Positions 746 to 61,445 of a stretch of DNA of 64,000 nucleotides are shown here, one piece after another. The first letter of the stretch is position 1, and every line of letters starts with the position of its first letter. The notes beneath the pieces are model-generated. The model worked only from the letters and a program-made list of their open reading frames with translations. It did not search any database and was not told the DNA's origin. Made by a program: the position numbers and the translations under genes. Source of the stretch: Gekko japonicus (lineage: Eukaryota); assembly GCF_001447785.1 (NCBI RefSeq), contig NW_015162031.1, forward strand, positions 66,075 through 130,074, written 5' to 3'.

Positions 746-1329
746 CTGCCCTCTCCCCTTCCCTGGGCACTGGGAGTGCAAATGTGATGCTTCGATTTAG
801 GGTTCCCACTTGGAACAAACATTATTTAACAGACAGCTGAAATTAGGAGGTGGAAGACATTGAGACCTCCCTCCAGCTTTGATCCCATGCAGTCTTCAAG
901 CTCCAATGCAAAGCATCTTGCATCACGTGTCCAAGCCAATAGTTCTGTCCATGTCAGGGATCACTATCCCACCATTCAGAATCTTTGTTCCTATTTCCCT
1001 GTGTTTTGCTCATTTTGCATTCCTGTAGACTAGCACAAAACAGGGTGGGCGACACGTATTGTAAACATCACAAAATCTTGTGCTATTTCATTGTAAACAA
1101 ATATAGGGTGTGAAAAGGTATTGAGTTCTGATATGGAAAAGTGGATTTAAATTTGAATGTATATAAACATTACACTTTGTCTTGAGGGGTGTTTTTTGAT
1201 ATTGTTTCTGTGTTTGTTCTTTTTCGTTATGATATTAATATCAGTAAAGTTATAAAAAATGAAAACACAAAGAATAAATAATTTCTTTAAGTTGGGAAGG
1301 ATGACATAGCCAATGCTTTGGACCAACAG

Positions 1330-1531
1330 GATGACACCACATTATTCTTGCTTCCTGGTTCACTTCGAATCCCTCATTTTGGTTTCTGTCATAGTATCAT
1401 AATCTATGGCCAACTCTCACTTTAACAGTGGGTGGAATTCTTATATTGGATCATTTGCTCAGGTTTTTGTTTTGCTCTTTTTTGGAGGGTCAGATTTTAC
1501 ACACATGCACCAACAGTGATGGCACCTGATT
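1330..1531 (+). pseudogene. OR pseudogene, 5' part (TM2-TM3), interrupted by the Ngaro element
   Basis: Translates as LVSVIVS*SMANSHFNSGWNSYIGSFAQVFVLLFFGGSDF...TVMAPD. This aligns with LVSVLMPKAMANSFLNTRSISYSACVSQVFF...TIMAHD of the 50118 OR. Confidence 0.85.
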
Positions 1532-1534
1532 ATT

Positions 1535-1966
1535 GCCCCCCCCCCCAGATGGAAGAAATAGACAGACAAGAAGGTTGGATGAAATAAGGCCACTTTATTA
1601 AATTATTAACTTTTAACTTATCGGCAAAGGGCAACCATGAAAACAGCGGCACGGCCAGGCCTGGCATCGCTTCGACTCTCATCCTCAAACCATAGGAAGG
1701 CAAAACACAGCAGCCCCCCGGGTTGGAGCCAACCATAAGTCACTTAAAATCCCAGCCGTGCCAAGATTGGGATGCACCCTCAGGAGCCCTCAAACAGCAC
1801 TGCATGGCCAGCGCTGAGTCTCCGTCATGACCATCCCCATAGGCGGTCTGCAAGCCTCACGCAGGCCGCACGGCTACAAGGTTGGTCGAGCAGACCCCTC
1901 TACCCACACCCTGGGTTATTAAGTGGTACTTGCTGGCTGCTGAACTGTATTTTAACCTAATTCTGC
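1535..1966 (-). repeat. Ngaro split direct repeat B2 (3' terminal)
   Basis: Direct repeat of 2344-2769, with AATAAA on the minus strand near 1595-1600. Confidence 0.95.
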
Positions 1967-2163
1967 CCTAACAAAGTGACGAACTAGCCCCTAGGCACCA
2001 TCCCAGACCAATTCCTCAATCCACTGACCGCAGTGCAGGGTAAGCGAAAAAGACCCCATCTCAATAGCCAATGTGAGAATGGAACCAAAAAATTCCTACT
2101 CGGCTCCCCATTAAACAGGGCAACCAGCCTATGCTTACACTACATACAGGGCGGGTTGGTGGG

Positions 2164-2340
2164 CCGAGCACGAGGCGAGCTCCTGGCCGGAGAGAGAGCG
2201 GAGCAAGTCTATTAAGGCTTCCAGGCTCCGCTCCCCCTATTGGAGCTGAGGCTCCACCGCACCCTGCCTGCCTCCTCCTCCTCACGAGGAGACAAACGGG
2301 GCCCCACGAGGCACGCTTGGGCTGTCTCGTGTGGGGCCGA
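2164..2340 (-). repeat. Ngaro split direct repeat A2
   Basis: Direct repeat of 10133-10310, abutting B1 through ATT at 2341-2343. Confidence 0.95.
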
Positions 2341-2343
2341 ATT

Positions 2344-2769
2344 GCCCCCCCCAGACGGAAGAAATAGACAAACAAGGTTGGATGAAATAAGGCAACTTTA
2401 TTAAATTATTAACTTTTAACTTAACGGCAAAGGGCAACCATGAAAACAGCGGCACGGCTTGGCCTGGTGTCACTTCGACTCCCATCCTCAAACCATAGGA
2501 AGGCAAGACACCGCGGCCCCCCGGGTTGGAGCCAACCATAAGTCGCTTACAATCCTGGCTGAGCCAAGATTGGGATGCACCCTCAGGAGCCCTCAAACAC
2601 CACCGCATGGCCAGCTCTGAGTCTCCGTCGTGACCATCCCCATAGGCGGTCTGCAAGCCTCACGCAGGCCGCACGGCTACAAGGTTGGTCGAGCAAACCC
2701 CTCTACCCACACCCGGGGTTATTAAGTGGTGCTTGCTGGCCGCTGAACTGTATTTTAACCTAGTTCTGC
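2344..2769 (-). repeat. Ngaro split direct repeat B1
   Basis: Direct repeat of 1535-1966. Confidence 0.95.
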
Positions 2770-2810
2770 TACCACAAGGGGCAAGCCTCTGCTTAGGCCC
2801 CTGCGCCCAC

Positions 2811-3479
2811 TCAAACACCTATAATTAACCTAAGCCCTTGCCGCAAGTCCTGAAGGAAGATGTCATTTCCCTTCTCGGAAAGGTGCACACCATCCCCTCT
2901 GTACAGATCCAGAAATTCAAGCCAAATCTGGGGATGAGGCAAGTAGTGGCCCAATCCAACCTTCAACATTTTATAAAACTCCCCATTGGCTCTATGCCAA
3001 GCCCTCTCAATCCCTTTAGGGTCCCAAGCGTTACGCCAAACCAGGCGCGGAATCATGGCCAACCAAAGGATTACCGTGTCTGGCCATCAGCGCTTAATGC
3101 ACTTCAGGTCCTCCCTGGCTTGCAACACAAGGGCCTTCCCCTTCAGGTATCCCAAGTCGTTACCCCCTAGGTGGAGAACCAACACATCTGGTAGCAAGGC
3201 TGAACCGGCCTGAAATAAAAGAAGGAGAAGGCCCGGCCAACGAAGGCCCCGGCGGCCCCTCCACTCTACCGTAGCCCACTGGCTGAGGCCCAGTTGCGAA
3301 CCAATGGCCAATCGATTGGCCCGATGAGCCCCCCGGACGATGTAGCTGTGTCTGGAGATGAGAATCCGTCTTCTGCCACAAAACACAGCTCCTAGGAAGA
3401 AACGACAGTGAACTCCGGAAACCAACAGCATGAATAGCATTGCAAACAGTAACTCAAACCAAGGAAGGAGGGTGCACAT
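2811..3479 (-). pseudogene. SGNH/GDSL hydrolase-like ORF of the Ngaro element, with one premature stop at 3087-3089
   Basis: ORFs 3087-3479 and 2811-3062 are in the same frame. Motifs: (R)HSY, WRGRRG, PDVLVLHLGGND, DGVHL. Confidence 0.85.
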
Positions 3480-4101
3480 AACGTTTGTAAGCGGCAGAAC
3501 GCCACCTGCCCACTCTCTGAATGTCAGTAGTGGGATAGCCTAAGGCCACCACCGTGGAAGCAGCTCCTATTCTGAAGGAATGAGTGCCAAATTTCACTCC
3601 AGAAAGGCCTAACAATTCCAAAACCCGGGCCATAACAGCCCAAAACTGGTGCTTTGTCAGCGGACCACCATCAGCATGGATAAAGAGGTATCCATCCGCC
3701 ATGCCCCTAAAAGCCCTGTACTGAGATGAAGCCAATACAGGGCATAGCTCAGAGTTGGAACAGACACCCAACTTGATCACCGACCCTTTATGCCGCTGGT
3801 CAGTTTTGGATCCCCTGATCGTGATGTGCACCTCCCTTCCCTTAAATTGAAGGTCCCAAATGTGCAAAGCCCTGCCCGACTGGTCAGTCTTGGACATCGC
3901 TACAAGCTCGCTTACTCTAAGCGCCCCAATGAATGCCTGCAGCGAAGCCGCGTGGAACTGGCAAACTGACCGTTCATAGTCTCTTCGCATGCTAGGGGCG
4001 ATGGCAAGGCCTATTGCCCTGCAAGCCTCGGCCCTCCAACCTGCTATAGCTCCGGGGGCATCCTTGCCGGCAGAAGATCGGTGTCTGGAGCAAGCTGACA
4101 A
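3454..4101 (-). pseudogene. Tyrosine recombinase of the Ngaro element, internally deleted at about 3955
   Basis: Catalytic motifs ALRVSE, GSKTDQ, HSFRIG, GRWRS and AYKRY are present. The N-terminal segment seen in the 6193-6540 copy is missing. Confidence 0.9.
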
Positions 4102-6018
4102 AACCTCTCCATCTGTTTGCGAGAGAGAGCGTCAGCTACCCCATTGTTCACCCCCGGCACATGATTACCTAAAAACAGTGTGTTGAGTTCAGGCATCACA
4201 GTGTAAAGCCTCGAACCAGGCACATTACCAGTGGCGATTTAGATTTGAGGGAATTGATGACGTGTACCACTGCCAAATTTGTTGTAAGTTAATCTCCAGC
4301 AGGAAGATCAGTGTGATCTAACTGACAGCTACCTGTCAGCAGGTGGTGTGATAAGACTGGTTCTAACCGGTTATGACTGGCACTGGACAGTGCGCAGTCA
4401 CCATGACTCAGCTTGTAGCTGATTGGTGGCCAATGTATATATGTGTTGTACAGAAGCCATGTACATCTCTTCTGATGAAACCGAGTGTCTGGTGAAGCAG
4501 TTTGTCTGTATATCTTGTGAATAAAACCCTTGTACATAGTGTACCACTGGACTGTTGCAGTGTGGTTACTATAAGGGACTTCACAGCAAAAGATTGCAGC
4601 AAGAGCTGCTAAGGCTGAGAGGCTGGAAAGACCTTAAGTTGCTAACTTGCTTTAAAGGCTGGTGTCTTGGACTGCTACATTCTCGCTCCCGCAACAAAAT
4701 TATCGCACCAAAAGTGCACCGTGTGATTCGCCAACTTATTCCCCCACAGCCAAACCGACACTAAAATGGGGAAGAACTCCAGGTATGTCAGGTCTCTGGT
4801 AAACCCAGCACAAACCCATTCCTCAGGCCAGTCCGCAGCACACCAGTGCCTGCGAAAATAAACTCCAAAGCCCTGGGACCCTGCGGCATCTGACATGACC
4901 TGCAACTCTGCTTCGAGCTTTAAGTCCTCCCACCAAAAAGAGACTCCATTAAAGAAAGTCAAAAATTCCTGCCAAACCATGAGGTCATCCTTCATTGCGC
5001 AGTTCACACGCACCTTGTGGTGCGGCCGCCAAAGCCCAGCCATGGCCTCACACAGCCTGCGCAAGAAGGCCTGAACAGGGGCCACCACTTTACATGTGAA
5101 GTTAAGGTGCCCCACTAGCTGCTGGATATCCCTCGGTGAAGCCTTCCTCAGAGAAAGGAATTCAAAAATATGATCCCTCAAGTCTGTGATTTTTTCCAAG
5201 GGCAGTCGGGATGTCTGGGCCACTGTATCCAGCTCCACGCCCAGAAAAACCAACTTCTGCTGAGGGCCTTCAGTCTTTTCATGGGCCAATGTAACCCCCA
5301 GCTCCATGGCCAAATCCTGAAACCCTTGTAGGAGCTGGGCACATCTACCTGTTCTTTGAGGATCTACAAAAAGAAAATCATCTAAATAGTGTGCAACATC
5401 CTGAAGGCCCATCTTGGCTCGTAAAGCCCATTCCAGGAATGAATTGAAGCGCTCAAATGCCGCGCATGACACAGAACATCCCATGGGCAAAGCCCTGTCC
5501 AAAAAGAACTGGCCATCAAAGGAGAAACCCAGCAGCTCGAAATCATCTGGATGCACGGGGAGGAGGCGAAATGCAGACTTAATATGGCACTTCGCCAACT
5601 CTGCCCCCCGACCACAGCGCCGCACAATCCGTACTGCCTGGTCAAAGGAGGTGTACCTCACTGTGCACAGATCCTCAGGAATGGCATCATTAACTGAATC
5701 ACCTCGAGGATATGACAGGTGGTGAATTAAACGAAATTCACCAGGTGCTTTTTTAGGCACAATCCCCAGAGGTGAACCTCTCAAATTAGGAATCGGTGGT
5801 GCAGAAAATGGGCCCAGAACACAGCCCTCCTCCAATTCTTTGTCAATCTTTTTTCTCACCACCGACTCCATGTCCTTAACTGATTTAAGATTAGAGGCCA
5901 TAAACGGGGCCCTAACTCCCTGAAAGGGGATTCGAAAACCAAACGTGAAACCTTCTAATAAGTAAACTCCGCCCTCTACTTTAGGGTACTCCCGCAGCCA
6001 TGCTTCAAGAGCCGTCAG
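4011..6018 (-). pseudogene. RT/RNaseH copy 2 of the Ngaro element (5'-truncated, RNaseH interrupted by a solo LTR)
   Basis: 408-aa ORF with FRLIHHLS, LPMGCS, HYLDDF, SDAAGS and WCDN. The RNaseH tail continues at 4011-4274 beyond the insertion. Confidence 0.93.
4280..4696 (+). mobile_element. Solo LTR (417 bp; Gypsy/BEL-type)
   Basis: TGTTG...CAACA termini, 5-bp TSD AAATT (4275-4279 and 4697-4701), AATAAA at 4520. The empty site CCAAATTATCG is present in copy 1 (~6757-6767). Confidence 0.92.
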
Positions 6019-6192
6019 CAGGGGTCATTTCGTAGAAAAAGAGCTAGGGGGACTCATTAGCATAACTCATTAGCATATGCCACACCCCCTGACATCACCG
6101 GAAGTGTGTCATAAGGCCACACCCCCTGACATCACCGGAAGTGTGTCATAACATCTACATATTATAATATAGTGTAAGAACTTCACAGTACT
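6019..6192 (+). mobile_element. Single end of a hAT-like DNA transposon at the junction of the two pol copies
   Basis: Starts CAGGGGTCATTTCGTAGAAAAA (hAT-type terminus; similar start at ~62109). Internal 36-bp tandem repeat at 6079-6114 and 6116-6151. No second TIR. Confidence 0.6.
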
Positions 6193-6540
6193 GAACATCT
6201 TTCTGATCTGAAAGTCCCCAGTGACTTCCTTAAAACCCATAGCCTTGCTAGCGAATGCAAGGGCAGAAAGACGTCCCCGTATGGAGCTAACAGCCAAACC
6301 TGCATCCTTTAAATAAACACAGTAATGCATCAGCTGCTCCAATGCAATGGGCCAGACCCTGGGATAGCCCTCTAGCTTTCTAAACTCCTCGAATTGGCGA
6401 ACTGACCGTTCATAGCCTCTTCGCATGCTAGGGGCGATGGCGAGGCCTATTGCCCTGCCAGCCTCGGCCCTGTGCTAGGGGCGATGGCGAGGCCTATTGC
6501 CCTGCAAGCCTCGGCCCTCCAACCTGCCATAGCTCCGGGG
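6193..6540 (-). pseudogene. Truncated N-terminal part of the tyrosine recombinase, copy 1
   Basis: MRRGYERSVRQFEEFRK...SIRGRLSALAF...DFQIRKM matches the start of the 3454-4101 ORF. Contains a 47-bp tandem duplication at 6426-6518. Confidence 0.85.
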
Positions 6541-8090
6541 GCATCCTTGCCGACAGAAGATCAGCATCTGGAGCAAGCTGACGAAACCTCTCCATCTGTT
6601 TGCGAGAGAGAGCGTCAGCTACACCATTGTCCACCCCCGGCACATGCCTAGCTAAAAACAGTGTGTTGAGCCGCAGGCATCGCAGTGTAAAGGCTCGAAC
6701 CAGGCACATTACCCGTGGTGATTTAGATGTGAGGGAATTGATGACGTGTACCACTGCCAAATTATCGCACCAAAAGTGCACCGTGTGATTCGCCAACTCA
6801 TTCCCCCACAGCCAAACCGCCACTAAAATGGGGAAGAACGCCAGGTATGTCAGGTCTCTAGTAAACTCACAGTCCTCAGGCCAGTCCGCAGCGCACCAGT
6901 GCCCGCGAAAATAAACTCCAAAGCCCTGGGACCCTGCGGCATCTGACATGACCTGCAGCTCTGCTTCGAGCTTTAAGTCCTCCCGCCAAAAAGAGACTTC
7001 ATTAAAGGAAATCAAAAATTCCTGCCAAACCAGGAGGTCATCCTTCATTGCACAGTTCACACGCACCCTGTGGTGTGGCTGCCAAAGCCCAGCCATGGCA
7101 TCACACAGCCTGCGCAAGAGGGCCTGACCAGGGGCGACCACTTTACATGCGAAGTTAAGGTGCCCCACTAGCTGCTGGATATCCCTCAGTGAGGCCTTCC
7201 TCAGAGAAAGAAATTCAAAAATGCGATCCCTCAGGGCTGTGATTTTTTCCATTGGCAGTCGAGATGTCTGGGCCACTGTATCCAGTTCCACGCCCAGAAA
7301 AACCAACCTCTGCACAGGGCCTTCAGTCTTTTCATGGGCCAAAGGAACCCCCAGCTCCGTGGCCAAATTCTGAAACCCTTGTAGGAGCTGGGCACATCTA
7401 CCTGTTCCTTGAGGACCCACAAAAAGAAAATCATCTAAATAGTGTGCAACATCCTGAAGGCCCGTCTTGGCTCGTAAAGCCCATTCCAGGAATGTACTTT
7501 AGCGCTCAAATGCGGCGCATGACACAGAACATCCCATGGGCAAAGCCCTGTCCATGAAGAACTGGCCATCAAAAGAGAAACCCAGCAGCTCAAATTCATC
7601 TGGATGCACGGGGAGGAGGCAAAATGCTGACTTAATATCGCACTTCGCCAACTCTGCCCCTCGACCACAGCGCCGCACGATCCATACCGCCTGGTCAAAG
7701 GAGGTGTACCTCACCGTGCACAGATCATCAGGAATGGCATCATTAACTGAATCACCTCGGGGATATGAAAGGTGGTGAATTAAACAAAATTCACCAGGTG
7801 CTTTTTTAGGCACAATCCCCAGAGGTGAAACTCTCAAATTAGGGATCGGTGGTGCAGCAAATGGGCCCAGAACCCGTCCCTCTTCCAATTCCTTGTCAAT
7901 CTTTTTTCTCACCACCGACTCCATGCCCTTAACTGATTTAAGATTAGAGGCCATAAACGGGGCCCTAACTCCCTGTAAGGGGATTTGAAAACCAAATGTG
8001 AAACCTTCTAATAAGTAAACTCCGTCCTCTACTTTAGGGTACTCCCGCAGCCATGCTTCAAGAGCCGTCAGGCTTATTGGACTGGGGCCT
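6494..8090 (-). pseudogene. RT/RNaseH copy 1 of the Ngaro element (in-frame stop at 7499-7501)
   Basis: ORFs 7499-7954 and 6494-7420 share a frame. YLDD and RNaseH motifs through ADALSR are present. Confidence 0.93.
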
Positions 8091-8094
8091 TTTA

Positions 8095-9364
8095 CTAGCG
8101 GAGGAGGATGAACCGCCCCTTCCTCTCTGCCTCTGATTCCTGCCAGGCCTTCTTTGTGGACAAGATTGGAAGAAGTGGGGGCTTCCTGTCACATACCCCC
8201 CGGTACCCAAAAACAGAGCAAGCGGGGTTGAACCGCCTGCCCTGTGACACCATGGGAAGTATTGGCCCCCTGTAAACGCTGCACGATGTGGCCACTATGT
8301 GAGCGTTCAACAGCCGCTAAGTCAGGCGTGGACATAATTTGAAGCATGGAATTCATAGCAGCCCTCATCCGGAACTCCTCATCATATTTAAGCCATGCCG
8401 GGCCCGGAAAGCCCGTATAGGCCTTATAAATTATGTCCAGGTACTGGGACAACGCATGGTGACCTCAAAGGCTGAGACCGGGACAACACACCGGCATAAA
8501 TTAAATATCCAGCCTGCCAATTGGCCCAGGTCCTATCGATCTTCTTCCTCCTAAGTATCTCCTTTTCCTTGTCATCCATCTCCTCTTTATCCTTCTTCTT
8601 TAAATCCCGGTAGAGAAGGCTAAAGAGGTCGATGAACTCACCTTTAGATATTTTTTCTTTTGTTGCAGGTAAAAGGTGATCGCCCAACGGCAAGGCGGTA
8701 TCACCGAAAGGCATAGCTGATGCAGACACAGCAGTGTAAGGGTTCACCCACAGGGGGGTACACCCTATATTACCCCAAGGGCCAGTTGGAACAGACCCCC
8801 AAGGGGACTGCATAGCTTGTGCAGGAGGGCCCCAAGCCCAGGACTGTGTATTATCACCAGAGCTTTTTGCAGTGCCGGTATGTGAGGCAGACGATGCCCC
8901 AGATCCAGCACCTTGACCCCACGGCCCCATGGCCACATCAACCTCATTTGAAGTGCCAGATCCCACGTACCACTAGGACCAGGCTGGACATGCTCCACCA
9001 CTTCCACTGGCATGGAATCCGCCTCACCTACAGCCACTCCAGACGCCCCAGTATCACACCCATCATCAGGCACAACAGCCCCAGACCAAGAAAGTTGGTT
9101 AACGATCTCATCCCTAAACTTCTTTCTCTCAGCCCGTTGTTGTTGCCTGCGGTCCGGCACCGGAACCACTTGATGGGGGGCGGGAACCACAGCAGACTTG
9201 GCTTGCTCCAAAGCAGCAAGCCTATCCAAAATTGCACACTGCTCTGCCCTCTTGTCCTCATCATCAGATGATGAAGGCACAGTTTCGGGGGGTGGAGCCG
9301 GCGTGGGCCTCTTAGGCGCAGGCCCTTTTCCCTTCACCCCTCCTTTTCCTTTCTTAGAAGCCAT
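8095..9364 (-). pseudogene. gag-like ORF1 of the Ngaro element, frameshifted
   Basis: Overlapping ORFs 8765-9364, 8424-8966 and 8189-8452. Basic N-terminus plus KEKISKGEFIDLFSLL and AWLKYDEEFR, typical of DIRS/Ngaro ORF1. Confidence 0.8.
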
Positions 9365-10132
9365 TATAGTAATTAATTATCAAATGGCAGCCTGGTAACC
9401 CAAATGTACCACCCCAAATGGCCACCTACAACACCTTAAGATGGCCGACTCCGAAATGCCCCCTACCCAGCAACAGGGATCAGGCTTAAGATTGGTCCTC
9501 AAAATGGCTGCTCGACTCCCTAAAAGCAAATAGAAAAAAGGGAGGGGGGAATGACACCACCCAAGTCACCAACCGCCTATATCAACAAGGACAGGGGCTG
9601 AAAGCAGGCCAGTGGGGTGGGTGGCAGGGTTGTGTAATTTTTCCTTAACATGGTGGAGCAGCCCGCCAAGGGCTGCTCTGCGCTGCGCTGCCCACCACAG
9701 CCCTTCCAAACAGTCAAAGACGGGCCCAACGCTCTCTGCCCAATGCTCTCTGCAAGCACAGCCCCAGCTGCTTCCAGGCCGCGTCGCCCGCTCGCTGTTC
9801 TTCAGCCCGCCTGCCCAGCCGCCAATGCGGCTGACTGCTCCCGGGCCCAAACTGAGCTGAGGGCTCGTCGCCGGAAGGCAAGCGCACTTCACCCTGCCTC
9901 CGGGGGGGGGAATCCCCGCCAGCCCAGCCCGACACTTCCCGCCCTCAGAAGCTCCGACGTGCAGCCACGAGCCGAGCCGACTGAACCGGGGCCCTTTAAA
10001 AACCATGCGGCACAGCCAGACAGCCCACAAAAAGCTTCGTTGTCACACTAAACTCTCCTGCTGCCTCAGGCTCAAGGTGAGCCCGAAGATACAGAAGCTA
10101 TCATGCTCGGAGCTCCACTCAAGCTGTCAAGC

Positions 10133-10310
10133 CCGAGCACGAGGCGAGCTACTGGCTGGGGGGAGAGCGGAGCAAGTCTATTAAGGCTGTCAGGCTCCGC
10201 TCCCCCTATTGGAGCTGACGCTCCACCGTAGCCTGCCTGCCTACTCCTCCTCATGAGGAGGCAAATGTGGCCCCCACGAGGCACGCTTGGGCTGTCTCGT
10301 GTGGGGCCGG
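10133..10310 (-). repeat. Ngaro split direct repeat A1 (5' terminal)
   Basis: Direct repeat of 2164-2340, followed by ATT at 10311-10313. Confidence 0.95.
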
Positions 10311-10313
10311 ATT

Positions 10314-10530
10314 ATGTTGCTATCTGCAGTCCTGTGCAATATGTAACAATTATTCACAAAGGAGCGTGCAGTCAGGTGGTAGTGATTTCATGGATTAGTG
10401 GTATACTTTATGCCATATTACAACTGTGTTGACATTTTTTCAGTTAACTTCTTCTCTAAAAAAGTAAATCTATTCTTTAATAAAATCCCAGAGTTAGTAA
10501 GGCTTTCTTGCTCTGAAATTATCTAGTTAG
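10314..10530 (+). pseudogene. OR pseudogene, continuation after the Ngaro insertion (TM3-ECL2)
   Basis: YVAICSPVQYVTIIHKGACSQVVVISWISGILYAIL...VNLFFNKIPELVRLSCSE, with stops and frameshifts. Confidence 0.88.
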
Positions 10531-11079
10531 CTATATGTGTACCTCATACATATCAGAGCAGGAGAACTTCAATTAATGTGGAATTCAGAGAAGAATGGAT
10601 TTGACCACATTTGAGCAAAAGGTGGTGAAATCAGTGCCAAAGTACGCAGTGTAGCAATCAACAAACCTTTCATTCACACAGTTACTGTCATCTGAATGCA
10701 GGTTCCTTTTTGCATAACTGTCTCATGTTATCAGGGATTACAAATAGCAGGGCACCAATAATATATTACCATTGTTAGTTTAACAGTGAAAGAAAAGTTG
10801 AGCTGTGCATCTGTAATATGGAATTGACCTGCTGTTCATAAGAGAATTGGCCTTAGCCATTCTTCCTGTGCCCTCCTCAAACCTTGAACTTGCCTTTTAT
10901 AATTTTTAATTCCCGACCATAGTTTTGTTCCTCACATGGAATCTATTATGATAGCTCAGTTCTTCAAATTAGTCAGACAAGGTCAAGGTCTACTAGGGCA
11001 AGGCATGTATACCATTGCTCTGATCTTCTTGGGGTTTTTTTGGAAGCTAGGAGTCACTATTGATTAGACATTCTGAACT

Positions 11080-15304: not shown

Positions 15305-16240
15305 TCATGTATTTGTTGCCAAGGTCCTAAAACCTAAAACTTTTGCCATGGCTTTTTTGATCTCCTTGTTTCTTATGCTGTAAATTACTGGATTCAGCAT
15401 GGGTGGAGCCAGGGAATACATTACAGCAAATATCAAATCCAGCTGTGATGGAGTGTTAGACACAGGCTTCAGATAGGCAAAACATACAGTGAATAAAAAT
15501 GTGGAGCAGACAATGAGATGGGGAATGCAAGTGGAGAAAGCCTTTTGACGTCCCTTTGTAGAAGGCAGTCTTAATACAGTGGTGAAAATGTGAAAGTAAG
15601 TTACAAGGATATAGACAAAACAGCCCAGCCCAAGGAAAACTCCAATCCCAATAGCTGTTGTTTCAATTAGATTTAGTTCAGAACAAGTCAATTTTATTAG
15701 CTGTGGAATTTCACAAAAAAATTGATTGACAATGTTAGAGCAGAAATGGGTTGCAAAAGTCCCACTGGTGTGCCATCCAGCATACAGAAAACCAGCGATC
15801 CATACACCAGTAATCATTTCATTGCAGACACGCCTATTTATTATTATCTCATAATGTAATGGATTGCAAATGGCCACATACCGGTCATACGCCATGACTG
15901 TGAGGATGCAGTAATTGGATATTGCAAAGGAATGAAAGAAGAAGACTTGAGCAATGCATCCTGAATAAGAAATGTGCCTGGTATTCAGGAGGGAATTGAT
16001 CATGGATTTGGGGACAGAGACTGAAATTTGACCAAGGTCCTGCATGGCCAAGTTCATCAATAAGAAGTACATGGGGGTGTGCAGGTGGTGGTCTAAAGCT
16101 ATTGAAAAGATGACGAGGAGGTTCCCTGTCACCGTGGCCAAGTACACCATCAGAAAAGCAATGAAGTGTAGAAACTGCCGTTCCCGAATCTGTGAGAATT
16201 CCAGGAGCAGAAAATCGAACACAGTGGTTTTGTTGGACAT
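15305..16240 (-). CDS. Olfactory receptor, OR14-like, 311 aa, intact
   Basis: MSNKTT N-glycosylation site, LHTPMY, MAYDRYVAIC, KAFSTC, PMLNPVIYS. The likely ATG is 16240, with a splice acceptor at 16269-16270 upstream. Confidence 0.95.
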   Translation of the reverse strand: MSNKTTVFDFLLLEFSQIRERQFLHFIAFLMVYLATVTGNLLVIFSIALDHHLHTPMYFLLMNLAMQDLGQISVSVPKSMINSLLNTRHISYSGCIAQVFFFHSFAISNYCILTVMAYDRYVAICNPLHYEIIINRRVCNEMITGVWIAGFLYAGWHTSGTFATHFCSNIVNQFFCEIPQLIKLTCSELNLIETTAIGIGVFLGLGCFVYILVTYFHIFTTVLRLPSTKGRQKAFSTCIPHLIVCSTFLFTVCFAYLKPVSNTPSQLDLIFAVMYSLAPPMLNPVIYSIRNKEIKKAMAKVLGFRTLATNT

Positions 16241-16399
16241 ATTTGACTCTGTTTCATGATGTATAATCCTTGAAGGGGGGGGGGGGGGGAAGCACATATG
16301 GGAAACTGTAAGAATTACCACCTTGCCAAATCCTGAAAGCTTGCATATGTTTCTGATTGCCTAGCAGTGACCACTAGTGGCATGACTGAGTAGCATGTT

Positions 16400-24643: not shown

Positions 24644-25609
24644 TCAGTGTTTCCCATTTATTTCTTCAAAGCCCACCCAAGAAATGCAAGGGAAATTAGT
24701 CATGGCTCTGCCCAGAGCCAACTGGATGTCTTTGTTTCTCAAGCTATAGATGATGGGATTCATGACTGGGGGCAAAACTGTGTACAGAACAGCAGCCAAC
24801 AAATCCACAGTTGGAGACGACAAGGCTTTGGGCCTCATGTATGAAAATGAAACAGTGAAGAAAAACAAACAAAAGACTGTCAAGTGGGGAGTGCAGGTAG
24901 AGAAAGCTTTTTGCCTGCCCTGAGCTGACTGAATCTTGAACACAGCAGAGAAGATGTAAGCATAAGAAACAAATATGAATGTAAAGCAAAATGAGCCTAA
25001 GATAAGTATATTGGCAAGAACGAAACTCTGAGCAGTTGCTGTATCACTGCAAGATATCTTAAATAACTGAGGGATATCACAGAAATATTGTTCAATAACA
25101 TTGGACTGACAGAACTGTAATGAAAATGTGTTCACAGTATGTACCAATGAAAGGATGAAAGAGGTGACCCAAGACACAGCTGCCATTTGGAGGCAAACAT
25201 TCCAGTTCATGATCCGCTGGTATCGTAGAGGATGGCAGATGGCTGCATAGCGGTCGTAAGCCATGGCAGTGAGAAGCAACAGCTCAGAACCTGCAAACAT
25301 AATCACCAGGAAAACCTGAGCGACACATCCAGAGAATGAAATCTGCTTGCTGCCCATCAAAGAATTGACCGTGGATTTGGGAACTGTAGTTGAAATGTAG
25401 CAGGCATCAAGAATGGAAAGGTTGACCAAGAAGAAATACATGGGGCTGTGGAGGTGGTGATTCTGGGCGACAGTTGCAATCAGGAGAAAGTTTCCCATCA
25501 GGGCCACTAAATAAATGGCGAGAAAGACCACAGCATATAGAACCTGTAGTTCCTGAAGACTGGCAAATCCCAGAAGGACGAATTCTGTCACAGTTGTTTT
25601 GTTCACCAT
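24644..25609 (-). CDS. Olfactory receptor, OR14-like, 321 aa, intact
   Basis: LHSPMY, MAYDRYAAIC, KAFSTC, PVMNPIIYS. Splice acceptor at 25629-25630. Confidence 0.96.
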   Translation of the reverse strand: MVNKTTVTEFVLLGFASLQELQVLYAVVFLAIYLVALMGNFLLIATVAQNHHLHSPMYFFLVNLSILDACYISTTVPKSTVNSLMGSKQISFSGCVAQVFLVIMFAGSELLLLTAMAYDRYAAICHPLRYQRIMNWNVCLQMAAVSWVTSFILSLVHTVNTFSLQFCQSNVIEQYFCDIPQLFKISCSDTATAQSFVLANILILGSFCFTFIFVSYAYIFSAVFKIQSAQGRQKAFSTCTPHLTVFCLFFFTVSFSYMRPKALSSPTVDLLAAVLYTVLPPVMNPIIYSLRNKDIQLALGRAMTNFPCISWVGFEEINGKH

Positions 25610-35833: not shown

Positions 35834-36799
35834 TCAACGCTTCCGGTCTATTTCTTCAAAGCCCACCCAGGAAAAGCAAGGAAAATTAGTCATGGCTCTG
35901 CGCAGAGCCAGCTGCATGTCCTTGTTTCTCAAGCTATAGATGATGGGATTCATGACTGGGGGCAAAACTGTATACAGAACAGCAGCCAACAAATCCACAG
36001 TTGGAGACGACAAGGCTTTGGGCCTCATGTATGAAAATGAAACAGTGAAGAAAAACAAACAAAAGACTGTCAAGTGGGGAGTGCAGGTAGAGAAAGCTTT
36101 TTGCCTGCCCTGAGCTGACTGAATCTTGAACACAGCAGAGAAGATGTAAACATAGGAAACAGATATGACTGTAAAGCAAAATGGGCATAAGCTAAATGAA
36201 CTGGCAAAAATGAGGCTCTGAACAGTTGCTGTATCAGTGCAAGATATCTTTAATAACTGTGGCATATCACAGAAATATTGGTCAATAACGTTGGACTGAC
36301 AGAGCTGTAATGAAAATGTGTTCACAGTATCTACCACTGCTATGGTGACAGAGATGACCCAAGAAGCAGCTGCCATTTGGAAGCAAACATTCCAGTTCAT
36401 GATCAACTGGTATCGTAGAGGATGGCAGATGGCTGCATAGCGGTCATAAGCCATGGCAGTGAGAAGGAACAGCTCAGAACTTGCAAGCAAAATCACCAGG
36501 AAAACCTGAGCAACACATCCAGGGAATGAAATCTGCTTGCTGCCCATCAAAGAATTCACGATGGATTTGGGAACTGTAGTTGAAATGTAGCAGACATCAA
36601 CAATGGAAAGGTTGACCAAGAAGAAATACATGGGACTGTGAAAGTGGAGATTGTGGGCGACAGCTGCAATTAGGAGAAAGTTTCCCATCAAGGCCACTAA
36701 ATAAATGGCGAGAAAGAACACGGCATGTAGAATCTGTAGTTCTCGAAGACTGGCAAATCCCAGAAGGACAAATTCTGTCACAATGGTTTGGTTTACCAT
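35834..36799 (-). CDS. Olfactory receptor, OR14-like, 321 aa, intact; paralog of 24644-25609
   Basis: All OR motifs present. Splice acceptor at 36819-36820. Confidence 0.96.
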   Translation of the reverse strand: MVNQTIVTEFVLLGFASLRELQILHAVFFLAIYLVALMGNFLLIAAVAHNLHFHSPMYFFLVNLSIVDVCYISTTVPKSIVNSLMGSKQISFPGCVAQVFLVILLASSELFLLTAMAYDRYAAICHPLRYQLIMNWNVCFQMAAASWVISVTIAVVDTVNTFSLQLCQSNVIDQYFCDMPQLLKISCTDTATVQSLIFASSFSLCPFCFTVISVSYVYIFSAVFKIQSAQGRQKAFSTCTPHLTVFCLFFFTVSFSYMRPKALSSPTVDLLAAVLYTVLPPVMNPIIYSLRNKDMQLALRRAMTNFPCFSWVGFEEIDRKR

Positions 36800-48709: not shown

Positions 48710-50117
48710 AACTCTGGTTCGCAAACCTCAAGCAGACCAAAATTCATTATGAACTTCATTTTGTCAGCCTGCTCATGCCCATCTCCACTTGACACCACGG
48801 TATGTGACAGACTGTCTTCTTCAAGTTCCCCCCCCCCCATTCATATACACCTTCTTGGCTCACCCTGGCCTATGTAATTTATCAGGTGAATTAAGTAATC
48901 ACAGAAAAAAATCTGATGTACTAATAGGTGTGGATTTTTCTCTTGTGACTTTGATCTTATTTAATGTAATCAGACACAGATATGTTGTATTAGTTATCAA
49001 GTTATGCTTATTATGAAAACAGAAGAAATAATATAGCAAAGGGGGAAAGGTTTCAGCCTCAGCTCGCAATTAAGTGAGCTGAACTCTTGGGAGTAAGTTG
49101 TCAGGTGCAGAATATAAATGGATCTCTTTCTCATTGATACAGCCCTTTTGCTTTGGGTTAGACAGAAATTGGGAATGTACATTGTAGCAAGTCCCACAAC
49201 TAGATGTAAGGAATTACACTGTTGAAAGAATATATTTATTTTAGAAGCTAGAGAAGAAATTGAAGCTGATGTTATCAAGGTTCTTATACATTTTCTCATT
49301 GTACCATGTACCATATAGCTGATGTTTTCCCCTCTGTATCACAGCCTCCAGAACTCTCTTTGAGCCTGAGTTTTGTGTTTATAATACATGATATCCATCA
49401 ATCTGACCATATGAGCATACGGAATGAAAACACAATATTTGCAAACTCAGTTACAACCTCGGCAGAAATTGGAACAAGAGATCCCAGGATGAAAAGAAGA
49501 GGAAGTACTTGGAATACTGCTTCTACCAGGGTATTCAATCATTTATGATCCTGGACAATCAGTATGTTTGTTTGTACCAAATTATTGTAGAAAACTGATA
49601 GTTACTCCTTCCCATCATCTATTTCCTTTTATTTTACTATTTCAAAATGTTGCATTGAGCAAATACCCTAGTTAAAAATAAAACTTAAAGCAGAACCTTA
49701 AAGTATAGAATAAGTGTGGATCATGGCTCAAGAAAGTATCCACTACCTATTTTCCATGAACAATGCTGTATGCACAATGGCAATGCGTGCACAACCTGCA
49801 GACACATAGAGTCACTTTGTGAAGTTTGATATAGTTCCAGATCAAGTGGCTAGAATCTATAAGCATGGAACTTGTGCAAGTGTAGTTCACTGCCATTTAA
49901 TATGAGGAAGTTGTGTTTGAGCACTGCAGGTGAGAGACTGTTCTCTGGCTATTTTGTCCCTGATGAAAAATTTGCCATTTTCCCCACGCTCAATTCAATG
50001 CTGGGCTGTCTCTTAGACTGAGATGGTGAAACAGTCTAATTGTTAATTGGTATTATGAGAATAAAATGGTTTCTCTAATATATTCTACAGGCAGACTGCA
50101 GTTGGGATATTGAGGAC

Positions 50118-51063
50118 ATGATGCCCAACCTTACTTCCACACCTGAATTTCTGCTCCTGGAATTTTCAGACATCCGAGAACTACAGATCTTACATTTCTT
50201 TGTCTTCTTAGCAGTGTACTTGACTGCAGTGAGTATCTTCTCATCATCATTGCTGTAGCCCTTGATCATCACCTGCACACCCCCATGTACCTTTTTCTCA
50301 TAAACCTGGCACTTCTGGATCTTGGCTTGGTTTCCGTCTTGATGCCCAAAGCTATGGCCAATTCCTTCCTGAACACCAGGTCCATTTCTTATTCTGCATG
50401 TGTATCTCAGGTTTTCTTCCTCTTGATCCTTGAAGTTCAGATTTTGCTGTCTTAACAATAATGGCACACGATCGGTATGTTGCTATCTGCCGTCCATTGC
50501 AATATGAGACAATTATGCACAGAGAAGCCTGCATTCAGATGGTAGCCAGTGCATGGATTGCAGGCATACTCAATGGTATATTACACTGTGGAGGAACTTT
50601 TGCCATCACCTTCTGCTCCAACAAGATCAATCAGTTCTTCTGTGAAATTCCACAGATTCTAAAACTCTCCTGTTCTGACATGTATCTAGTTGAAGTTGGT
50701 CTTATTGTGTTTGGCTGTTTCCTTGTACTAGGATGCTGCATCTTCATCATCGTCTCCTACATGCAGATTTTTGCAGCAGTGCTCAGAATCCCTTCCATTC
50801 ATGGTCAGAAAAAGGCCCTCTCTACTTGCCTTCCTCACCTCACTGTCGTTTCTTTGCTTGTATTGACTGGCATCTTCGGCTATGTGATGCCTCGCAGTCA
50901 GGCTTCATCTGACCAGAATGTTCTTTTTGCAATAATTTATGCTGTTCTCCCTCCCTTGCTCAATCCATTCATCTACAGCATGAGAAACAAAGAAATCAAG
51001 ACTGCATTGTTGAAGCTCTCTGACTTGAGGCACTTTTCAAAACTAATTGCAGCTTTTCTGTGA
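50118..51063 (+). pseudogene. OR pseudogene, full length, with two frameshifts
   Basis: MMPNLTSTPEFLLL from 50118, with frame changes at ~50235 (GN motif lost) and ~50435. MAHDRYVAIC...PLLNPFIYS is intact downstream. Acceptor at 50089-50090. Confidence 0.92.
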
Positions 51064-60491: not shown

Positions 60492-61445
60492 ATGGCGAAT
60501 GCAACGTCCATTTCAGAGTTCCTGCTCCTTGAATTCTCAGTGATACGGGAACAGCAGATCCTTCACTTCCTTCTATTCCTGGCACTGTACTTAACAACAG
60601 TCACAGGGAATCTTCTCATTATCACTGCAGTGGCTTGTGACCGCCACTTGCACACACCAATGTACTTCTTTCTCATAAACTTGGCCATACAGGACCTTGG
60701 TTCAGTGTCAGCCATTATCCCAAAATCCATGGTCAATTCACTCATGAATACTAGAGACATCTCTTATTCTGGATGTGTAGTTCAAGTTTTCTTTTTCGTG
60801 TTCTTTGTAGGATCTGATTTTTTTCTCCTCACTGTCATGGCATATGACCGGTATGTTGCCATTTGCAAACCCTTACAATACGAAATGGTGATGAACAGGC
60901 AAGCCTGTACCCAAATAGTTGCCACTGTATGGATCATTGGCCTTCTTTATGGAGCACTGCACACTAGTGGCACCTTTGCAGCTACTTTCTGCTCCAATAT
61001 TGTCAATCAGTTCTATTGTGAAATTCCACAGTTGCTCAAGATCTCCTGCTCTGACTCATATCTAACTGAAGTTGGTGCTCTTGCAGTCAGTGTAATTGTA
61101 GAGTTTGGTTGCTTTGTCTTCATCATTGTAACATATGTGCTGATCTTTTCTACAGTGCTAAGAATGCCCACTATCAAAGGAAGGCAAAAGGCCTTCTCCA
61201 CTTGCCTTCCACATCTCATTGTTTTCTCTACATTTATAGTTACTGGGTGGTTTGCTTACCTGAGGCCTCCATCTGAAACACCTTCTGATCTGGATTTGGC
61301 ATTAACTGTGATCTATACTTTTGTCCCACCCATGGTGAATCCCATTATTTATAGCATAAGGAACAAGGATGTCAAGATTGCCCTGTCAAAACTGTTTGTT
61401 CAGTTGTACTCTTCTGAGAAAATCTTACCTAGTATTTGCATCTAA
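60492..61445 (+). CDS. Olfactory receptor, OR14-like, 317 aa, intact
   Basis: MANATS, LHTPMY, MAYDRYVAIC, KAFSTC, PMVNPIIYS. Acceptor at 60458-60459. Confidence 0.96.
   Translation: MANATSISEFLLLEFSVIREQQILHFLLFLALYLTTVTGNLLIITAVACDRHLHTPMYFFLINLAIQDLGSVSAIIPKSMVNSLMNTRDISYSGCVVQVFFFVFFVGSDFFLLTVMAYDRYVAICKPLQYEMVMNRQACTQIVATVWIIGLLYGALHTSGTFAATFCSNIVNQFYCEIPQLLKISCSDSYLTEVGALAVSVIVEFGCFVFIIVTYVLIFSTVLRMPTIKGRQKAFSTCLPHLIVFSTFIVTGWFAYLRPPSETPSDLDLALTVIYTFVPPMVNPIIYSIRNKDVKIALSKLFVQLYSSEKILPSICI

Follow-up and report, generated by a model that had tools for sequence, protein, structure and literature searches.

For DIRS1-like retrotransposons, the accepted model of integration involves a 3-bp sequence common to the circle junction and the target; no target-site duplication (TSD) is made, and the triplet is NTT, mostly ATT (PMC3266345; PMC7192593, citing Goodwin & Poulter 2001). 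The sequence-only reading of the locus described here treated integration of a circular cDNA as established. The circular double-stranded intermediate is, however, a model, and DIRS-1 cDNA was found to be mostly linear and single-stranded (Malicki et al. 2020, PMC7192593). For Ngaro elements we found no statement of a triplet rule in the open literature, and Muszewska 2013 is silent on targets. Here we analyse an Ngaro copy within a 64,000-nt stretch of Gekko japonicus DNA (the window). We consider it probable that this old copy was joined to a host ATT by recombinase crossover at a shared core, at the DRY motif of an olfactory receptor (OR) pseudogene fragment.

Positions 1535-10313 of the window are a single old, dead copy of an 8.8-kb Ngaro (DIRS-order) retrotransposon of squamate lineage, coding on the minus strand. 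A Pfam scan of nine minus-strand ORFs detected RVT_1 (2e-10, on the pol copy at 4678-5901) and Phage_integrase (1.4e-9). The same nine ORFs gave no match to rve, the DDE integrase, and no methyltransferase family was among their matches, an absence that is not absolute given that the copy is decayed. The lack of a methyltransferase sets Ngaro apart from DIRS1-like and PAT elements. Lipase_GDSL_2 scored E 0.007, under its curated cut-off, and the GHS, GGND and DGVH blocks were read by eye in the translations. Over an alignment of 546 aa, pol is 60-67% identical to 'ribonuclease H'/Ngaro pol proteins of gecko, anole and other lizards, and its RT and RNase H are of the Gypsy-related DIRS type. 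The tyrosine recombinase (YR) is 55-61% identical to squamate Ngaro YR proteins, and residues 1-84 and 123-292 of the gecko homologs are recovered in the element. The RT, the YR and the split direct repeats, together with nearest relatives among the pol and YR proteins of squamate Ngaro, support the assignment to Ngaro made earlier from the letters. Within the 64,000-nt window there are no further copies of the element and no solo repeats. Scanning a viral contig collection with the element RT yielded no match, and a metagenome pattern scan yielded one match only, a chance one in an unrelated GC-rich contig. The parts of the element are as follows.

1535-1966, minus strand: repeat A, outer copy, the 3'-terminal repeat in element sense; opens with G and C11; K2P 0.069 against the inner copy
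1586-1591, minus strand: AATAAA signal in outer repeat A, roughly 50 nt short of where the element ends
1967-2163, minus strand: 197-bp spacer between outer repeat A and inner repeat B, single-copy within the element
2164-2343, minus strand: repeat B, inner copy, ending GGGGCCGA-ATT; with 2344 onward, the internal circle-junction template
2344-2769, minus strand: repeat A, inner copy, starting with G and C8
2811-3479, minus strand: putative SGNH/GDSL hydrolase remnants in two ORF pieces (Lipase_GDSL_2 below cut-off, motifs by eye)
3457-3963, minus strand: catalytic half of the tyrosine recombinase, residues 123-292 of gecko homolog P0124 (the Phage_integrase match)
3955-6018, minus strand: duplicated block within the YR gene, comprising residues 36-556 of pol and 1-19 of YR
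4280-4696, no strand assigned: 417-bp solo LTR, TGTTG...CAACA, a later insertion with 5-bp TSD AAATT
6079-6444, minus strand: N-terminal (core-binding) half of the tyrosine recombinase; Phage_int_SAM_1 E 0.008
6518-8146, minus strand: pol (RT/RNase H) copy of full length, matching gecko homolog P0001 over residues 11-556 in a single frame
8189-9364, minus strand: Gag-like ORF1 remnants, start MASKKGKGG..., three overlapping ORF pieces recognised by eye
10133-10313, minus strand: repeat B, outer copy, the 5'-terminal repeat in element sense, ending GGGGCCGG-ATT; K2P 0.089

By blastn and alignment, the two copies of repeat A (1539-1966 and 2345-2769) are 92.8% identical with homology beginning at ATTG, and the two copies of repeat B (2164-2343 and 10133-10313) are 91.2% identical with homology stopping exactly at ATT. 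A repeat divergence of K2P 0.07-0.09 suggests that the insertion is tens of millions of years old. Repeats B and A abut at 2343/2344, giving the split direct-repeat arrangement A1-[ORFs]-B1A2B2 plus the 197-bp spacer. Read depth was highest, within the stretch examined, over this spacer. In element sense, on the minus strand, the order is 5' repeat, gag, RT/RNase H, tyrosine recombinase broken by the internal duplication and putative SGNH hydrolase, followed by the inner 3' repeat joined to the inner 5' repeat, the spacer and the outer 3' repeat. The duplicated block is 93% identical to 6391-8071 (K2P 0.064-0.072). YR residues 1-84 correspond to 6444-6193, the remainder of 6079-6444 being decayed, and the Pfam scan of the Gag-like remnants was without a match. 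The solo LTR has a clean 5-bp TSD, and the other pol copy still retains the empty site (6759-6763), indicating that integrase-type insertions are recognisable at this locus.

The left end of the element reads CCTGATT-ATT-GCCCC, with the ATT at 1532-1534, the internal repeat junction reads GGGGCCGA-ATT-GCCCC, with the ATT at 2341-2343, and the right end reads GGGGCCGG-ATT-ATGTTGC, with the ATT at 10311-10313. The junction letters reported from the sequence alone are therefore correct at all three places. A 3-nt direct repeat thus borders the element, and the triplet at both ends is identical to that at the internal (circle) junction, as in trinucleotide-core integration of the DIRS type. Given that the frequency of ATT in the flanking host DNA is 0.026, the triple identity at a single locus exceeds chance modestly (p about 0.03). 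At 2340 the majority of reads from other copies have G, the letter found at the right end of the window copy. The internal joint of the family, GGGGCCGG-ATT-G, is therefore identical to that end, and this G is element sequence.

The flanks are the two halves of a frameshifted, truncated OR pseudogene fragment of roughly 425 bp, into which the element inserted antisense at the DRY motif. The sequence-only reading had proposed a hidden OR gene; the OR-derived sequence and the DRY position hold, but the fragment is no gene. The halves were searched and mapped separately, not as a joined sequence, and the ruler against which they were placed is the set of paralogous ORs in the same window, in place of an ortholog.

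1325-1534, plus strand: OR pseudogene, left half, from TM2 as far as the D of DRY (translations, paralog match, BLASTP)
1532-1534, no strand assigned: left ATT, paralog bases 375-377, that is, former Arg codon bases 2-3 and the T of the Tyr codon
10314-10528, plus strand: OR pseudogene, right half (YVAIC ... SCSE), frameshifted and carrying a stop; 7tm_1 E 7e-4
10546-10860, minus strand: second OR fragment, inverted and more decayed, tail-to-tail with the first
50461-50489, plus strand: motif of the nearest paralog, ATGGCACACGATCGGTATGTTGCTATCTG, the ruler

The left half is interrupted by a stop and, about 15 nt ahead of the ATGGCACCTGAT motif, by a +5-nt indel. Its flank is 66% identical to paralog positions 50327-50445, and by BLASTP it corresponds to residues 80-110 of an intact window OR (E 0.006). 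The right half, YVAICSPVQY..., corresponds to residues 121-157 of the intact OR (BLASTP, E 5e-12), and its flank matches paralog positions 50476-50691 at 73% (E 4e-32; 2.8e-30 in the whole-window search). The intact OR used for comparison scores 7tm_4 at 1.2e-45. Homology thus extends over TM2-TM4 with the MAYDRYVAIC motif, which in the fragment reads MAPD-Y-YVAIC. The inverted fragment at 10546-10860 was considered as an internal empty site and rejected, its DRY region being different and more decayed.

We find that the left flank, ungapped, reaches paralog base 377 at 1534, and that the right flank aligns from paralog base 377 at 10313, so that 10314 is base 378. Therefore no host base was gained or lost except the repeated ATT; the overlap in paralog coordinates is exactly 3 nt, a single target triplet by this paralog-based measure. 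The motif ATGGC-N4-GAY-NNN-TAY-GTN-GCN-ATH-TG, for which 0.01 chance matches are expected, is present in all five other window ORs with exactly 3 nt between the GAY and TAY codons. Insertion of linear DNA independently of homology, by blunt or end-joining or with a 3-bp staggered-cut duplication, would make the identity of the triplets a coincidence. With one locus to judge from, a probability of 0.026 for ATT at any particular host position cannot be neglected, and the mostly linear DIRS-1 cDNA (PMC7192593) agrees with such a route. Yet end-joining usually removes or adds bases at the target, whereas every target base is retained here, and the element has a tyrosine recombinase without a DDE integrase; we regard linear insertion as improbable.

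The same coordinates bear on a longer duplication. GATTAT is present on both sides (1528-1533 and 10310-10315), and other indels lie near in the pseudogene, as would suit an element TGCCCC...GGGGCCG flanked by a 6-bp duplication within an OR that lacked the arginine codon beforehand. However, this needs a 3-nt deletion where five of five paralogs have 3 nt, and DIRS-order elements are classed as being without target duplication. Moreover, four of the six letters (G-ATT) occur also at the internal junction, family-wide in view of the G at 2340, and are therefore element sequence rather than target. The 6-bp duplication is in our judgement very improbable. It is incompatible with an orthologous empty site reading CCTGATTATTATGTT, one triplet longer; the shared-core crossover, in turn, is incompatible with an orthologous empty site reading GATTATGTT.

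At the arginine codon the window paralogs carry CGG or CGC, so 2-3 substitutions are needed to reach TAT, of which at most one is a CpG transition, and the earlier suggestion of CGT turning to TAT by CpG decay is weak. This cost, with the host codon CGG/CGC/CGT having become TAT, falls on the shared-core reading. It would drop to one host substitution if ATT belonged to both element ends as a terminal redundancy and the insertion deleted 3 host bases, for example GGT from GAT-TGG-TAT, TGG being one CpG transition from the paralog CGG. No mechanism is known for such an event, though, an exact 3-nt loss would have to mimic a conservative exchange, and only one ATT, rather than two, is present at the internal junction; we regard this reading as very improbable. 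With the ATT taken as a shared core, the DRY arginine would have been lost before the insertion, the host codon being already NAT, so that the receptor was probably dead when the element inserted.

The ATT at the internal junction together with the 3-nt paralog overlap fits a crossover at a shared core. Because the polyadenylation signal lies some 50 nt inside the element, the last bases are presumably absent from the RNA; they would be restored from the inner joint, GGCCGG-ATT-GCCCC in the family form seen in reads, which is a copy of the joined element ends. DNA with joined ends, presumably circular, would then recombine with a host ATT, with the tyrosine recombinase of the element family as the putative catalyst and a core of presumably exactly 3 nt. 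Such an exchange would leave an ATT at either end and otherwise neither add nor remove host bases. The exact overlap and the ATT at the internal junction accord with the conservative crossover proposed in the sequence-only reading, although that inference is not new. Against it, the shared-core reading rests on one locus, the other indel 15 nt upstream in the pseudogene makes a local 3-nt loss conceivable, and DIRS-1 cDNA has experimentally been mainly linear and single-stranded (PMC7192593).

The family numbers tens of copies in the genome. On the A-repeat side, about 4 nt, TTT+G, are conserved at the read ends of other copies and the flanks beyond them are unrelated, which indicates many independent insertion sites with a short conserved boundary block. 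Such a block, in place of random letters, also speaks against homology-independent insertion of linear DNA. In a plurality of other copies TTT, not ATT, stands beside the A-repeat end, so the prediction that other copies carry ATT fails as stated, and a strict 3-nt ATT core may not extend across the family. Across four read sets the loose ends have a consensus finishing in CTTTG, with T rather than A most frequent at the third base ahead of the G. This consensus would follow if the same recombinase inserted the element with a core of only TT, or with a loose NTT preference, the A on the left being a host base by chance; in DIRS1-like termini (NTT) the first base varies and the two ends sometimes differ (PMC3266345, Table 3). 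Yet A is present at all three junctions of the window copy, reads spanning the internal junction have no change at 2341-2343 among the changes listed, and two subfamilies, each with a core of its own, would account for the data just as well; we hold the shorter or looser core to be unlikely, if less so than linear insertion. Across the family, then, NTT, TT or a subfamily-specific sequence may serve as the core. Tentatively, the locus, taken with the read data, could be the first base-resolved conservative 3-nt-core exchange of a vertebrate Ngaro, in a family whose subfamilies differ in core within one genome (ATT here, TTT mostly), each matching its own internal junction. If true, the core would be copied from the element and would retarget the recombinase.

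Compared with described Ngaro elements (Goodwin & Poulter 2004, cited in PMC7192593, PMC8547959), the window copy shares RT/RNase H with a tyrosine recombinase, the split direct repeats A1-[ORFs]-B1A2B2, the lack of a methyltransferase and, probably, that of an integrase-type target duplication. An SGNH/GDSL hydrolase ORF downstream of YR is an optional extra of vertebrate Ngaro, present in those of fish and amphibians, and the putative hydrolase remnants here would correspond to it. The window copy differs in its 197-bp spacer, which separates the inner copy of the 5' repeat from the outer 3' repeat, in the 2-kb internal duplication that splits the recombinase gene and in the later solo-LTR insertion. 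Cryptons, tyrosine-recombinase DNA transposons (PMC3212892, PMC13465315), likewise have short direct repeats at their ends that represent junction/target microhomology, not duplication, but, unlike the window Ngaro copy, they lack a reverse transcriptase and terminal repeats and do not pass through RNA. With DIRS1-like elements (Goodwin & Poulter 2001; Piednoel et al. 2011, PMC3266345; PMC7192593) the copy shares a trinucleotide at both ends that equals the internal junction; in those elements it is as a rule NTT, with ATT commonest, and the model is an exchange with the same triplet in the genome that makes no target duplication. DIRS1-like elements carry inverted terminal repeats and internal complementary regions, whereas the window copy has direct repeats and a simple B/A joint. 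The codon motif conserved in five window paralogs serves as a ruler for an insertion without host gain or loss beyond the shared triplet, and the later integrase-type solo LTR in the same element provides, with its ordinary 5-bp duplication, the contrast. The accepted model is unchanged, and the hint of TTT versus ATT between copies is testable with tens of copies and public reads. The locus is a tidy example of the published tyrosine-recombinase insertion model and not a new mechanism.

Judged from sequence, the element that interrupts the olfactory receptor (OR) sequence is a Ngaro of a squamate lineage, given its domains, its relatives and a repeat plan, A1-[ORFs]-B1A2B2, that is known for Ngaro elements (PMC8547959, PMC7192593). 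Its coding capacity lies on the minus strand throughout, and Pfam gives no match to a methyltransferase or DDE integrase among its scanned ORFs. The nearest pol proteins are those of Eublepharis (67%), Anolis, Rhineura, Hemicordylus and Podarcis, followed by frogs at about 50%; the nearest recombinases come from the same lizards. G+C content is 52.8% in the element vs 42.0% in the remainder of the window.

Domains and terminal repeats of the element
4678-5901, minus strand: RVT_1 (Pfam, 2e-10)
3457-4101, minus strand: Phage_integrase (Pfam, 1.4e-9)
3090-3479, minus strand: weak GDSL match (Pfam, 0.007)
1539-1966 and 2345-2769: repeat A, 92.8% identical (self-comparison)
2164-2343 and 10133-10313: repeat B, 91.2% identical (self-comparison)

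On re-reading, the letters that the sequence-only reading gave for all three junctions are exact: CCTGATT-ATT-GCCCC on the left (ATT at 1532-1534), GGGGCCGA-ATT-GCCCC internally (2341-2343) and GGGGCCGG-ATT-ATGTTGC on the right (10311-10313). In pairwise alignments homology between the repeat B copies ends precisely after ATT, and homology between the repeat A copies opens at ATTG, then enters a C-run of unequal length (11 in the outer copy, 8 in the inner). We mapped the OR halves one by one, never joined, onto the paralog whose motif lies at 50461-50489 (plus strand). In the left flank, ungapped, window 1525 falls on paralog base 368 and hence 1534 on base 377, the T of the Tyr codon, and the right flank alignment begins at 10313 (377), with 10314 at 378; therefore the flanks overlap by exactly three paralog bases, 375-377, with ATT on either side. 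Exactly three bases separate GAY and TAY in five of five other window ORs (0.01 matches expected by chance). Retention of one ATT, as first proposed, reproduces the OR family spacing; retention of none or of both does not.

A 6-bp target duplication, GATTAT at both sides, fails: it requires a missing codon, and given that G-ATT also stands at the internal junction and that reads of other copies have G at 2340, those letters belong to the element. If the insertion was blunt or made a random 3-bp duplication, the ATT match has to be a coincidence of about 0.026, whereas shared-core recombination, a crossover between the ATT of the joined element ends and one host ATT, would require no coincidence. 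In a DIRS1-like survey NTT was present in 23 of 28 elements, ATT being the commonest (PMC3266345), and Malicki et al. repeat the shared-core idea, crediting Goodwin & Poulter 2001 (PMC7192593). The initial interpretation is thus largely right, but its mechanism was already published; the insertion here would be an example of it, and the one point of doubt is an ATT/TTT question.

That question comes from raw whole-genome reads of Gekko japonicus aligned to window 1300-2900. Read depth is about 1-5 in the unique flank and 20-250 in the element, indicating tens of copies. In each run 62-70 reads cross the outer A boundary and enter sequence that differs from the window, and their 30-nt consensus, with an agreement of only 0.42, varies between runs save for the last letters CTTTG. 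Other copies have about four conserved letters at this boundary and then unrelated flanks, so that a short boundary block is conserved across many independent loci. ATT had been expected beside other copies, but the block reads TTT; near window 1540 other copies read CTTTG followed by C7, vs TATTG and C11 in the window copy. Reads over the internal junction give GGGGCCGG-ATT-G, the triplet being unchanged among the rows listed. The difference would come either from subfamilies of ATT type and TTT type or from a core that is in truth TT/NTT. Read depth in the aligned stretch peaks, at up to about 250, in and around the 197-bp spacer (1967-2163) and there exceeds that of the repeats.

The host, taken earlier for a hidden OR gene, is instead a pseudogene remnant with stops, frameshifts and a +5-nt indel ~15 nt upstream of the motif, and it stops at about 10528, where an inverted OR fragment takes over. 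Its right flank, translated as YVAICSPVQYVTIIHKGACSQVVVISWISGILYAILQ, aligns with residues 121-157 of an intact window OR (E 5e-12; 7tm_4 of that OR, 1.2e-45) and its left flank with residues 80-110. In nucleotide comparison the right flank has its match in the OR at 50476-50691 (73%) and the left flank in 50327-50445 (66%). The second fragment (10546-10860, minus strand) lies tail-to-tail, 18 bp past the end of the first, and is heavily decayed, more than the first; this arrangement points to a past inversion or deletion within the OR cluster. The closest paralogous OR (50100-51063) is probably a pseudogene too, given a frameshift just upstream of MAHDRY and that its C-terminal 200 aa alone lie in one ORF.

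Intact ORs in the window
15305-16321, minus strand
24644-25609, minus strand
35834-36799, minus strand
60492-61445, plus strand

At the DRY arginine the window paralogs have CGG or CGC. The suggested CpG decay of CGT to TAT may account for one substitution, a CpG transition, but CGG or CGC to TAT takes two to three. Under shared-core recombination the arginine would have been lost before insertion; thus, the element probably entered an OR that was already a pseudogene.

Mapping of gecko homologs onto the element gives its gene layout.

Gene layout of the element
8146-6518, minus strand: full pol, one copy
6444-6193, minus strand: recombinase N-terminal half, decayed beyond
6018-4696, then 4282-4035, minus strand: second pol, with an abrupt start at residue 36
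within 6018-3955, minus strand: second copy of recombinase residues 1-19
3963-3457, minus strand: recombinase catalytic half, residues 123-292

This order, with two pols and a split recombinase, marks the block 6018-3955 as a duplicative insertion within the recombinase gene. The 2-kb duplicated block (3955-6018 vs 6391-8071) comprises pol residues 36-556 and recombinase residues 1-19 and is lodged between recombinase residues ~122 and 123. The block differs from the first copy by a K2P of 0.064-0.072, the same level as within the terminal repeat pairs (0.069 and 0.089), so the duplication is about as old as the insertion. Perhaps it arose by template switching in reverse transcription, and this copy probably relied on a recombinase supplied by another. 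Positions 6079-6444 are mostly recombinase N-terminal domain, and only ~60 bp (6019-6078), next to the duplicated block, are unassigned. Where pol and YR overlap, the upstream copy carries a 47-bp tandem duplication (6391-6518) that the downstream copy (3955-4035) lacks. Inside the second pol lies a 417-bp solo LTR (4280-4696; TGTTG...CAACA, internal AATAAA) that has AAATT as its 5-bp target duplication; the other pol copy keeps the empty site uninterrupted, CCAAATTATCGC, at 6759-6763.

The terminal bases of the element would be restored from the inner joint, which fits a polyadenylation signal at 1586-1591 (minus strand), ~50 nt short of the element end. AATAAA in the element sense is present in both repeat A copies, at 2398-2403 and at 1586-1591 on the minus strand; therefore a transcript spanning the internal junction has to pass the first signal, a read-through problem that LTR elements share.
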